NCBI GenBank assembly: GCA_002269645.1
Contig: NIVC01000087.1
Location: forward strand, 558,001 to 622,000
DNA length: 64,000 bases
Source: Macrostomum lignano
Taxonomy: Eukaryota
Direction of reading: 5' to 3'
Both the position numbers and the translations under genes were made by a program. Below, piece after piece: positions 19,106 through 22,407 of the stretch. Below the pieces are notes generated by a model. The model was not told the origin of the DNA. It saw only the letters and a list, made by a program, of their open reading frames with translations, and did not search any database. How positions within the stretch are numbered: the stretch's first letter is position 1; each line of letters begins with the position of its first letter.

Positions 19106-22100
19106 ATGCGGCCAGTCCGCTGGAATAGGCAGCGCCTGGTCCGCCTGGCGCTGGCCGCCCTGGCCTCCCTGTTGCTGGCCGCCTGGCTCTGCTACGCCTT
19201 GCTGAGCTCCGAGGCCGCCGACTCCGTCGCTGCCAAGCGCTACCTAACTGGCTACAATGCCGAAGGTCTCGTCCAGGATGTCTACAACTTTCCTGACTTG
19301 GCTAGCGGCCAGCGGCGCTTTCGGCCTCGTCAGCCGACGCCTGCGACGACGCCGACGTCAATGCCGACGTTGGCTGCGGCTGCTGCCCGTCCGCGCACGC
19401 CGGCTCCGACCAGGCGCTACGGAGTGCTGAAGCCTACCAGCCGACCCCGACCGACCCGCCCCCCGCCCGACCTGTTTGCTGCGCGAATTCCACCAGGCGG
19501 CCAGATGTACGCCGTGCCCGATGTACCCGGTCGCCACATTGGCCAGCTAGTCGACGATGGCCGTCACGCCGAGCTGTTGGCTTGGGCAGAGCGTCTGTTT
19601 GCCGATTGCGGCGGCTCGCTGCGCTCGGTGCCAGCGCCGTCAGGCGTCGCTCTGACCGCAGCGACAGCGCCGCCGCTAGCCAACGGCCTGATTGGCCACC
19701 GGCCGTTTGTTGAGCGCCACATGTTTGTTGACGGAGCGTTCACCGCGACCGGCTACCGTCTGCGGGTGCCGCAGCTGGCCTACCGCAATATCAGCCTGGT
19801 GTCCACGCCGGCCGACGGTCGGCTGCGCCGCCGGCTGGACTTCTTGGCGCCGTTCGGCCAGCTGGTGCAGACCATCGCCACTGCTGACAGCGTGGTGGAG
19901 CAGCGGGTGGGTGCATATGCAGACAGACAGGCACACACACACACACACAGACAGACAGACAGACAGACAGACAGACAGACAGACAGACAGAGAGAGATAC
20001 AGACAGACAGGCGAGCACTAAGTGCTGTGCCCGATGCTCTGCGAGAACCCTTTACCGATTTACTCTAAAACCAATCCAGATCTACGCGCACGCTCTGTTG
20101 CCAACGGTGCTGGTGCACGAGGTCGACATCCTGCGCAAGCTGGGCCACGTCGACTTGACTACCGGCTTCACCGTCACCTTTGAACGTGAATGGTCAATGC
20201 CGGATGGCGTGGAGGTTACGCAACTGACGCTGCGCAACGAAACACTGCGCAGGCGACTTGGCCAGAACGCCAGGGTGCTACAGATTTCTACTCCTGTGAG
20301 TGACCCAACACTCTACTACTAATAGTAGCACTAATACTAATAGTAATGTGCCGATTGTAATACAAAAAAAGGTAAATAGACTACTACTACTACTACTACT
20401 ACTACTACTACTACTACTACTACTACTACTACTACTACTACTACTACTACTACTACTACTACTACTACTACTACTACTACTACTACTACTGTGCTAAATT
20501 TTCCAGGAGCTTTCCACCCGCCGCGGCGCCCGAGTCTACGTTGTATTCGACCAGCTGTCCCAAGATTTGGAGGCGCCGCGGGGCAAGCACCGCTCTCGCG
20601 CCACTTTTCTACAGTCTAGCGCGCCAAATTTGGGCGACGCGCTGGCCGGATACCTGGCGGCCAGGTGAGCTGCGGCAAATTTAGGCTGTTGGGGATTTGC
20701 TACTTGTTTATTGATTGGGATTCGATTGGCACGTATTTTGCCAATTCTAGGCGCCTCACAAAAGCGCCGGCAGTGAGCGGCGGCGCCGGTAGCCTCAGCG
20801 ACCGTCTCGGCGAGGCTCACCTGTCCGCCTGGCGCGCCGTCTGGCTGGAGTCGGGCCTGCTGGCGGACGAAGGCATCGGCGGCCACCTGTGCCGGCGCCT
20901 GCTGGCCGCTCAGCAGCAGCTGCTGTCCAGCCTGCCGCTCTATCGGCGCCTGACGCCGCCGGCAGCGCTGCGCTCCGGCCGGCTGCCGGCCTACAGCGGT
21001 TTGGCCTTCAACGGCCTGTCGGACGAGGCTGCCCGGGTCACCTTCGACCAGGACTTGTGGTCGGTCAGCTACCTGGCCCTGACTGCGCCAGCCATGGCCG
21101 CTGAGCTACTGGCTGGCCGAGCCGCCCAACTGCCCGGCGCCATGGCCCGCGCCAATCGGACCGGCTGGTCCGGCGCCCGCTACTGCGCTGAGCCGCTGCT
21201 GCAGGCGGCTGCTCCCGGCGGCCAGTGCCACCCCAAGCCGCTGCTGCACTCGGACCCGGAGCGAGATGATCACGTGACTGGCGACGTGGCAATCGGCGCC
21301 GCCGCCTACCTCATGGCTACCGGACGGCGCGCTGACCGCCTGGCCAGCCTCGGCCGCCGCATTGTGCAGGAGGCGGCCAGGTACTATGCTAGCCGGACTG
21401 TGGACTCCGGCCTGCTGTCCGCTGGCAGCGGCAAAGATCGCCGCCGACGCCGCAAGCTGGTTGGCACCGCCTTCTCTGTGGGCGTTGCCAAGCGGACGCT
21501 GGTCCTGCCCGAGCTGCTGGGCGGCGGCGGCGGCAACAATGCAACCAGCAGCCTGGCCAAGCTGTCCAGGCAGCTCCGTCTGCCGCAGCAGCGTGACGGC
21601 GGCGACGACAGCAGCGGCGACGGCGTCTTTCATCCTGACGTGGCGCCGATCGTCGGCGGCGCCGTCCGCTTCGGCCCGGCCATGCTGCCATTCCCGGTTG
21701 GCTTGGCGCTGCCTCGGCCGGCGCTTCGGCGCGACCTCCTGGCTTATGCCGGCGCCCTGCTGGCCGCTGGCGGCGCCGACCCGCCCGTCCCGCTGCTGGC
21801 CGCTACCGCCGTTGCGTGGCTGCGGCTTGGCCAGCCCAAACGAGCCTGGGCCGCCCTTCGAGCCGCTCTGCCAGCATGCAGCGGCCCGGCCGGCTGCACT
21901 CAGCAAGCGACTGGCGGCCCGGCGCCGGCTCCGCACAATGCCGCGCCGTTGCTAAGCGCGGCGCTGTTCGGCTACGCGGGTGCCCGCCTGACCGGCCCCA
22001 ATGGCCTCGTGCTCGGGCCCTGCGCCCTGCCGCCCGGTGTTGGCCGGCTCCGCCTGTTTGGCCTGCATTTCCATGGCAACCGGCTGGCCTTGGAGGTGTC

Positions 22101-22407
22101 GGACGGCAGCTTGACTGTCCGGCTGGCCGGCTGGTCGGCTCACCGGCCCGACAAGCTGTCCGTGGCCGATTCGCTGGCGTCGAGGCCGCTGCAAAAAATT
22201 GGCGCCTTGGTGCGGACCGCCTGCGACTCGGAGCTGCGCATCGTGGCTGAGCCTGTTGACGCGGCCGAAAGTGCCGGGGAAGCCAGCGACGCCGAGTACT
22301 CGACAGCTGCTCGCGGCCTTGCCAGCGTCAACGCCGTGGCATTCGACAAATCGTTTGCCGCTGATTTTCTCGCCGGTGAGAGTGAAGCAGCCAAGCAGTC
22401 TGCTTAG
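19106..22407 (+). CDS. Type II membrane glycoside hydrolase family 65 (PGGHG/ATHL1-like) protein, 943 aa, probable pseudoenzyme
   Basis: Exons 19106-19906, 20080-20295, 20507-20664, 20751-22407 (GT-AG, 2832 nt, in frame). N-terminal signal-anchor LVRLALAALASLLLAAWLCYALL and a Pro/Thr stem. Collinear PGGHG-like blocks: ANGLIGHRPF, QR-IYAHALLPTVLV, HLSAWRAVWLESGL, FDQDLW, HVTGDVAIG, FHPD, LFGYAG, GLHFHGNRL. Confidence 0.8.
19922..20008. repeat. (CA)/(GACA)n microsatellite in intron 1 of the GH65-like gene
   Basis: Direct reading. Confidence 0.9.
20378..20490. repeat. (ACT)n microsatellite in intron 2 of the GH65-like gene
   Basis: Direct reading; source of the poly-Leu ORF 20300..20497. Confidence 0.95.

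Follow-up and report, generated by a model that had tools for sequence, protein, structure and literature searches.

A candidate pseudo-glycosidase with a GH65 fold encoded in the genome of Macrostomum lignano

The gene, its product and its second copy

The window analyzed in this study is a stretch of 64,000 nucleotides from Macrostomum lignano (GenBank assembly GCA_002269645.1, contig NIVC01000087.1, positions 558,001 to 622,000 of the forward strand), and all coordinates below refer to it unless noted. Positions 19106-22407 (+) hold a four-exon gene for a divergent relative of PGGHG, a member of glycoside hydrolase family 65 (GH65) that hydrolyzes Glc-alpha1,2-Gal-Hyl and thereby removes glucose from collagen. 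The original prediction, made from the letters of the window, described a membrane-anchored GH65/PGGHG homologue that had lost its catalytic machinery and was a candidate pseudo-glycosidase, and this core claim survived all of the tests that were run. Its gene model of an intact open reading frame (ORF) of 943 amino acids (aa) was right in the length of the product and wrong in its continuity. One uninterrupted ORF was rejected, because the list of ORFs contains two separate pieces (19106-20068 and 20665-22407), and an internal exon and three GT-AG introns are required to obtain the full product from a spliced coding sequence (CDS). When donor and acceptor pairs were enumerated for an open frame, 12 stop-free combinations were obtained, and the following four-exon combination yields the 943-aa protein.

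19106..19906, +, exon 1 (aa 1-267): ATG, signal-anchor, Pro/Thr/Arg stem, N-terminal extension, then the GH65 N-terminal beta-sandwich beginning at about aa 190
19907..20079, +, intron 1 (GT...AG): contains a (CAGA)n microsatellite of about 23 copies at 19920-20010
20080..20295, +, exon 2 (aa 268-339): N-terminal beta-sandwich, according to the splice model and AlphaFold2
20296..20506, +, intron 2 (GTGAGT...AG): contains a perfect (ACT)37 at 20380-20490
20507..20664, +, exon 3 (aa 340-392, last codon split by the intron): last part of the beta-sandwich, first part of the helical linker
20665..20750, +, intron 3 (GT...AG): 86 nt in both genomic copies
20751..22407, +, exon 4 (aa 392-943 and the TAG stop): linker, (alpha/alpha)6 barrel, C-terminal beta-sandwich and acidic disordered tail (aa 893-943)

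Over its full length, the spliced product matches GenBank PAA91439.1 ('hypothetical protein BOX15_Mlig032566g2', Macrostomum lignano) with 100% identity. For the Mlig_3_7 assembly, the GenBank annotation relied exclusively on RNA-seq data and assembled transcriptomes, using StringTie, TACO and TBONE followed by TransDecoder (PMC5730564), so that the identical GenBank model provides independent transcript evidence for these splice sites. Every motif coordinate of the original prediction proved exact when checked on the spliced product.

A second genomic copy is present on contig NIVC01002595 (L001) and encodes a 944-aa protein (P0002), and a third contig encodes a protein identical to P0002. 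The M. lignano DV1 line is known to carry large recent duplications (PMC5730564). The CDS pair of the window copy and L001 differs at 41 substitution sites and by one extra Arg codon in a poly-Arg run, and the first two introns differ in length (173 versus 234 nt for intron 1 and 211 versus 249 nt for intron 2). In both copies the frame is open over 943-944 codons across all three introns. A gene for a G-alpha protein lies upstream of both copies, represented in the window by an ORF fragment at 8228-8779 (+) with a Pfam G-alpha match (E 1e-43), indicating that the duplicated block reaches at least that far.

When the copy pair was analyzed by the Nei-Gojobori method, 29 synonymous (Sd) and 12 non-synonymous (Nd) differences gave a dS of 0.037, a dN of 0.0059 and a dN/dS of 0.158, and the binomial probability of so few non-synonymous changes under neutrality was 1.8e-8. 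Eight of the 12 amino-acid differences fall inside the 670-residue core. The two near-identical copies thus differ as expected under purifying selection. Lack of expression combined with a dN/dS near 1, which the original prediction had named as evidence against itself, was not what we found: the ratio was 0.16 and the GenBank model is derived from transcripts. A pseudogene was rejected on the basis of the dN/dS and the intact copies. A search for an expression pattern returned nothing, as Mlig032566 was absent from the full text of the papers searched, and Mlig032566, Mlig003441 and Mlig033927 were absent from the supplements of M. lignano papers.

The CDS has a GC content of 69% (79% at third codon positions), compared with 42% in its own introns and 44-48% in the neighboring ORFs. 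This GC excess is confined to the exons, which is not expected from regional mutation bias; the window is similarly GC-rich at 40-46 kb. Horizontal transfer from a GC-rich microbe was considered as the cause of the 69% GC and was rejected, because the gene has spliceosomal introns and its named top relatives are nearly all metazoan. Two further observations concern the flanks of the gene. A tandem repeat with a 46-bp unit (TTCAGCAGGGATATTTCCCCAATCCCCAGTGTGCATAGCAACTGTC; 7.4 copies, 95% matches) occupies 18635-18975 and ends about 130 bp upstream of the ATG; the array is also found upstream of the L001 copy, where multiple offset BLAST hits show it to be longer. The region beyond the stop codon contains a tRNA-like 'GGTTCGATTCC' box (22609), which was discounted, as ARAGORN predicted no tRNA and the sequence occurs once in the window.

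Fold, active site and predicted membrane anchor of the protein

The claim that the protein is collinear with PGGHG was confirmed by phmmer against PDB sequences, in which aa 192-861 aligned with the human PGGHG chains 9sd4-9sd8 (E ~1e-15), and the alpha-1,2-glucosidase FjGH65A (7fe3) came next. The PGGHG alignment begins at aa 192, and the N-terminal extension that precedes it has no PGGHG counterpart. The Pfam models suggested for checking the assignment agreed in part. Glyco_hydro_65m scored 36 bits (cut-off 27) at aa 489-608, spanning only positions 35-157 of the 371-position model; Glyco_hydro_65C reached 17.5 bits, which is under its cut-off of 22; and no Pfam 65N match was found on the protein. 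A profile comparison by hhalign, with both M. lignano copies on one side and 103 relatives on the other, aligned aa 165-894 with all 686 positions of the profile (probability 100%, E 3.8e-61).

A word-indexed homologue search returned the protein itself only, and when 1.84 billion representatives were scanned exhaustively with HMMER, no relative above 27% identity and only 18 proteins below E 1e-10 were found. The identity to the closest relatives, which are metazoan PGGHG-like proteins, is only 22-27%, and in the comparison with PGGHG it is 21-27%. The named proteins in the top 20 are almost all metazoan and PGGHG-like (Owenia, Branchiostoma, carp, Antedon, Hypsibius, Glandiceps, possum, oyster, abalone, rotifers and Argonauta); the remaining named matches come from a choanoflagellate, a diplonemid and one planctomycete. 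No canonical GH65 protein of M. lignano was present among the 20 top matches whose sources were looked up, a comparison in which the M. lignano genome itself was not searched, and the gene is at most a putative 'paralogue'.

The structure prediction that had been proposed as a test returned the full four-domain GH65 fold. The AlphaFold2 model, based on a 48-sequence alignment, had a predicted TM-score (pTM) of 0.75, and 542 residues had a predicted local distance difference test score (pLDDT) of at least 70. In the predicted domain order, a beta-sandwich at about aa 190-380 is followed by a helical linker, then by a helical barrel spanning about aa 410-800 and lastly by a C-terminal beta-sandwich at about aa 801-892. 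When the model was compared with known structures by Foldseek, six human PGGHG entries ranked first (E 5e-35 for 9sd8, target-normalized TM 0.83), followed by FjGH65A (E 4e-21) and then by GH65 phosphorylases. The Pfam, phmmer, HMMER, hhalign, AlphaFold2 and Foldseek results, taken together, indicate, as judged by sequence and predicted fold, that the protein genuinely belongs to the metazoan PGGHG branch of GH65, in which it is very divergent.

The roles of the active-site residues in GH65 are known from FjGH65A. Its general acid is Glu472 in the motif PDE (E430 in human PGGHG) and its general base is Glu616 in the motif WTE (human E574); Tyr337 is hydrogen-bonded to the base, the +1 subsite contains Trp391 and Glu392 (motif PWES), and the E472Q and E616Q mutants retain <0.1% activity (PMC8626586, PMC11442529). 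The -1 subsite is formed by Trp343 and Asp344 (FWD) together with Lys538 and Gln539 (KQAD), which were reported to be completely conserved (PMC8626586). GH65 spans hydrolases, phosphorylases and a transferase; the general acid was stated to be conserved in all characterized members, and the phosphate site of the phosphorylases and the transferase consists of two consecutive Ser residues, S631 and S632 in CsKP (PMC11442529). Titles of the PDB entries confirm that E430 and E574 were the residues mutated in human PGGHG.

Residue equivalence was taken from four alignments (phmmer, MAFFT-auto, MAFFT L-INS-i and hhalign), and column counts from a 105-sequence L-INS-i alignment containing 103 relatives. 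The segments of the M. lignano protein that stand at the places of the GH65 active-site motifs are as follows.

21025..21054, +, EAARVTFDQD (aa 484-493): degenerate YxGHxFWDQD loop, with TFDQD at aa 489-493 (21040-21054)
21181..21192, +, YCAE (aa 536-539): replaces the +1-subsite motif PWES
21433..21456, +, KDRRRRRK (aa 620-627): polybasic loop replacing the general-acid motif PDE[YF]H; five Arg, six in the second copy
21667..21678, +, RFGP (aa 698-701): replaces the -1-subsite motif KQAD
21895..21906, +, CTQQ (aa 774-777; CTQ at aa 774-776, 21895-21903): replaces the general-base motif WTE

The predicted loss of the catalytic machinery was borne out at both catalytic positions. The general acid is Glu in 98/103 relatives and is Arg or deleted in the M. 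lignano protein: the position of human E430 is occupied by Arg622 in MAFFT and by Arg623 in phmmer, the whole PDEYH lies opposite a gap in hhalign, and none of the alignments places a carboxylate there. The general base is a carboxylate in 97/103 relatives (Glu in 88, Asp in 9), and the position of human E574 is Gln776 or Gln777 in all four alignments (Gln777 in L-INS-i), which is the same E-to-Q change as in the crystallographers' PGGHG E574Q mutant. There is no Asp or Glu within aa 768-800, and the sole acidic residue in aa 611-645 is Asp621, the retained Asp of the PDE motif (Asp in 96/103 relatives in L-INS-i).

The substrate-binding subsites are also altered. At the -1 subsite, the Trp found in 99/103 relatives is Phe490, and the adjacent Asp (101/103) is kept as Asp491. 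In the KQAD columns, Lys (83/103) is replaced by Arg698, Gln (91/103) by a gap or Phe699, and Asp (92/103) by Gly700 in L-INS-i and by Gly or Pro across the alignments. At the +1 subsite, Trp (97/103) is Ala538 and Glu (85/103) is kept as Glu539. Glu484 stands in for the Tyr that contacts the base, and the NFxTGxGG loop is missing; together with Ala538, these are losses beyond those listed in the original prediction. Of the three carboxylates that are crucial in PGGHG (D301, E430 and E574), the D301 equivalent, Asp491, alone remains. The phosphorylase site is absent as well, as the equivalent of the GPAMTW loop is PPVPLL, with Pro-Val in place of Ser-Ser. A GH65 phosphorylase or transferase instead of a hydrolase was rejected, because the protein has neither the Ser-Ser phosphate site nor the acid.

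All 105 sequences were compared column by column. The M. lignano protein is off consensus at 8 of the 11 active-site columns, a count higher than that of any relative in the set, and it is the only one with neither the acid nor the base carboxylate. Among 64 columns that are at least 80% conserved in the relatives, it keeps 38 and changes 26, which is the fewest kept of any relative. The 26 changes are concentrated in the pocket-forming loops, and framework positions occupied by Gly, Ala, Trp and Arg are kept; the retained framework residues include Asn193-Gly194, His415, Trp419, Trp423, Arg515, Gly533, Gly548, His566, Asp570, Arg607, Gly799 and Gly802. The replaced loops are anchored on both sides by conserved blocks, with HxTGDV and SR lying upstream, A..L and HP lying downstream and FGYxGxR following the base. 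These comparisons indicate, at the level of sequence, that the catalytic loss is real, wider than originally listed and confined selectively to the active site instead of forming part of a uniform blur.

The closest non-self relative, P0005 from Owenia fusiformis (CAH1773057.1), has PNDLH in place of PDEYH, with Asp in the acid column, and keeps KQAD and WTE. Other spiralian PGGHG-like proteins thus vary at the acid position as well.

The N-terminal part of the protein contains two features that precede the GH65 fold.

19133..19210, +, hydrophobic segment (aa 10-35, LVRLALAALASLLLAAWLCYALLSS...): predicted type II signal-anchor
19301..19480, +, Pro/Thr/Arg-rich stem (about aa 66-125): predicted to be disordered

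The hydrophobic segment is preceded by five Arg residues in aa 1-13, has a Kyte-Doolittle 19-residue maximum of 2.24 and is the only such segment in the protein. AlphaFold2 predicted a helix at aa 6-39, with a pLDDT of ~90 for aa 11-30. These features fit a type II signal-anchor, but the segment may instead be a cleavable long signal peptide, cut after about aa 35-38. The Pro/Thr/Arg-rich region at aa 38-118 had a pLDDT <50 and no secondary structure in the model. The four N-glycosylation sequons of the original prediction are present at the sites given there (NIS 228, NET 320, NRT 527 and NAT 655), and all of them lie in the folded part, downstream of the hydrophobic segment. Hydrophobic segments at the N- or C-terminus are common in invertebrate PGGHG-like relatives and the anchor is not special to this protein, suggesting that secretory or membrane targeting is probably ancestral and not an innovation.

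The composition of the protein is unusual. Of its residues, 56% are Ala, Leu, Arg, Gly or Pro and 1.6% are Lys, and the Arg:Lys ratio is about 6:1. The GH65 core has a net charge of +28 and a pI of 10.6, which makes it the most basic of the 105 sequences, whereas the medians of the relatives are a pI of 5.7 and a net charge of -17. The polybasic loop (aa 614-629) has a pLDDT <50 and a different length in each copy, and it is probably a flexible surface loop. It contains R-X-K/R-R motifs, and furin cleavage at this site is a matter of speculation, as are a lectin role and collagen binding.

A probable non-catalytic GH65 fold and its alternatives

The gene is still transcribed and under purifying selection after these losses, so its product is most likely a non-enzymatic 'dead glycosidase'. 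We therefore favor, with a probability of roughly 0.6, the reading that the gene encodes a pseudoenzyme, i.e. a GH65 fold without inverting hydrolysis or phosphorolysis, tethered by the anchor and stem and retained for binding or scaffolding without catalysis. The features expected of a pseudoenzyme are present: the fold is kept, the catalytic residues are lost, the annotation is derived from transcripts, and one pair of recent copies carries the signature of purifying selection.

In the mechanism that we propose, a member of the metazoan PGGHG (acid-trehalase-like) lineage would have given rise to a GH65-fold pseudoenzyme in M. lignano, in which inverting hydrolysis or phosphorolysis of alpha-glucosides would no longer be possible. 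The signal-anchor would insert the protein with type II topology, and a flexible Pro/Thr/Arg stem, probably O-glycosylated, would present the GH65 body at the cell surface or in the secretory-pathway lumen, where it might act as a binding or scaffolding module. At the entrance to the former pocket, the acid loop would be replaced by the poly-Arg loop. Considering the cationic core and this loop, any ligand would more likely be anionic, such as a sulfated or acidic glycan or a matrix polyanion, than the neutral Glc-Gal-hydroxylysine of collagen. A more specific proposal, that the protein is the first GH65-derived non-catalytic receptor, a membrane-tethered, strongly cationic matrix- or glycan-binding protein into which the Macrostomum lineage would have turned an enzyme that deglucosylates animal collagen, with a poly-Arg-lined pocket that binds sulfated or acidic glycans and no longer hydrolyzes Glc-Gal-hydroxylysine, is possible and still doubtful.

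The protein was compared with characterized GH65 proteins. PGGHG (protein-glucosylgalactosylhydroxylysine glucosidase, ATHL1, EC 3.2.1.107; PDB 9sd4-9sd8) is the best match in both sequence and structure and has the same four-domain order, with Asp491 corresponding to human D301. In contrast to PGGHG, the M. lignano protein lacks E430, E574, KQAD, the Trp of PWES, the base-adjacent Tyr and the NFxTGxGG loop, and adds the signal-anchor, about 150 aa of disordered stem and extension, and the acidic tail; its core has a pI of 10.6 against ~5.7 in the relatives. FjGH65A shares the fold, the clan GH-L (alpha/alpha)6 barrel, and its Asp344 has a retained equivalent, whereas the equivalents of Glu472, Glu616, Trp343, Gln539, Trp391 and Tyr337 are all replaced. 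The hydrolase base and the Ser-Ser phosphate site of the phosphorylases are both missing. By predicted fold and by descent from PGGHG as read from the sequence, the protein is thus a GH65 member, and it has the catalytic residues of none of the GH65 hydrolases, the phosphorylases or PGGHG.

Dead glycosidases are known from other families and include the chitinase-like lectins (CHI3L1/YKL-40, GH18), heparanase-2 (GH79) and the beetle pseudo-polygalacturonases (GH28). The same principle applies there, in that a complete glycosidase fold stays under selection after replacement of its carboxylates in a secreted or cell-surface protein, and by analogy the M. lignano protein probably works in the same way. 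These dead glycosidases belong to other fold families than GH65, and the chi-lectins keep their sugar-binding subsites, which are eroded in the M. lignano protein. No characterized GH65 pseudoenzyme was found in the literature. The GH65 literature treats the acid as universal and filters acid-less sequences out of its analyses; one family survey removed 59 sequences without the catalytic acid (PMC8537180). If the pseudoenzyme reading is true, a full-length GH65 protein that is expressed and selected without acid or base would mean that this fold can be reused non-catalytically in animals, like GH18 and GH79. It would also offer a natural E-to-Q and E-to-R variant for comparison with the newly solved structures of human PGGHG. 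The question is directly testable in M. lignano, for which RNA interference and transgenesis are available.

Several points weigh against the pseudoenzyme reading. Only one pair of copies, very recent in origin (dS 0.037, 41 substitutions), provides the selection signal, and no orthologue in another species was found in the protein collections searched by the word-indexed and exhaustive HMMER methods. The finding is limited to one species and is a prediction from sequence and predicted fold. Residue equivalence derives from four sequence or profile alignments and the AlphaFold2 model, in which the acid loop (aa 614-629, pLDDT <50) and the segment around aa 479-490 are of low confidence. Asp621 adjoins the lost acid, 3/103 relatives have Asp in the acid column, and Glu484 introduces a carboxylate where the base-contacting Tyr would be. 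In addition, the basic charge could be a by-product of the GC-rich CDS rather than an adaptation.

Some of these observations would also be expected if the protein were still an enzyme with a rewired site, in which Asp621 would serve as the acid and Glu484 or Asp483 as the base, or in which the Arg-rich pocket would bind an anionic nucleophile or substrate and confer a new GH65 specificity. We regard this as unlikely. Asp491, Glu539, His566, Asp570 and Asp621 are indeed kept, the replacement of Lys by Arg698 is conservative, and Glu484 falls precisely on the position of the base-contacting Tyr (W-6); the Asp in the acid column of three relatives, the presence of hydrolases, phosphorylases and a transferase within GH65 (PMC11442529) and the purifying selection, which fits an enzyme equally well, point in the same direction. 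However, Asp621 falls on the acid position in 0/4 alignments, the -1 subsite is degraded (Trp, Gln and the KQAD Asp) and the +1 Trp is Ala, indicating that the glucose-binding site itself is compromised. The Ser pair of the phosphate site is Pro-Val, and the acid Glu is the residue reported to be conserved in every characterized GH65 enzyme (PMC11442529).

Decay provides a further alternative, in which a fast-evolving, GC-driven and lineage-restricted copy is transcribed without a function and the loss of the active site is part of its erosion. The low identity to any relative (22-27%), the lack of an orthologue in the collections searched, the extreme composition (56% Ala+Leu+Arg+Gly+Pro; 69% GC in the CDS against 42% in the introns), the variable length of the Arg run between the copies and the smallest number of conserved columns of any relative are all consistent with it. 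Against these stand the dN/dS of 0.16 (p 1.8e-8), with only 8/12 amino-acid differences in the 670-residue core, and the 943-944 codons that are open in both copies across three correctly spliced introns. The residues that determine the fold are kept, the core was folded confidently by AlphaFold2, and a transcript exists. Decay is even less likely than a rewired enzyme.

That the losses are an alignment or gene-model artefact of a highly diverged canonical PGGHG orthologue is very improbable: the low identity, the different alignment of the acid loop by each method and the Pfam match to only positions 35-157 of the 371-position catalytic-domain model would suit it, but each loop is anchored by conserved blocks on both sides, aa 768-800 contain no Asp or Glu and aa 611-645 only Asp621, the second genomic copy has the same sequence, the GenBank model, built independently from transcripts, is the same as the spliced model, and a search of all six frames of 19000-22600 for canonical motifs hidden in other frames or unrecognized exons (PDE[YFWH], KQ[ASG]D, FWD and NFxTG) found none.

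Other features of the window

Outside the GH65 gene, an ORF at 30536-31372 (-) has a DMRTA (DMA) motif (E 2e-10) and is probably an exon of a gene for a doublesex/mab-3-related transcription factor. A 574-aa ORF at 52089-53813 (+) has a weak match to the DNAJC11 beta-barrel (whole-protein E 4.5e-11, with no single stretch passing), which may be spurious or repetitive. Long GC-rich ORFs of 492 and 789 aa at 40672-44786 (+), in a region of 62% GC, have no Pfam match and may represent another fast-evolving or low-complexity M. lignano gene.

Repetitive sequence is found in two further parts of the window. A 33-bp tandem repeat (16.8 copies, 94% matches) lies at 15000-15554, and it overlaps with long ORFs on both strands at 13712-15739 (670 and 595 aa), which its periodicity may have produced as artefacts. 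The segment at 26001-28000 has a GC skew of -0.72, an AT skew of +0.30 and a GC content of 30%, which suggests a long simple-sequence tract.

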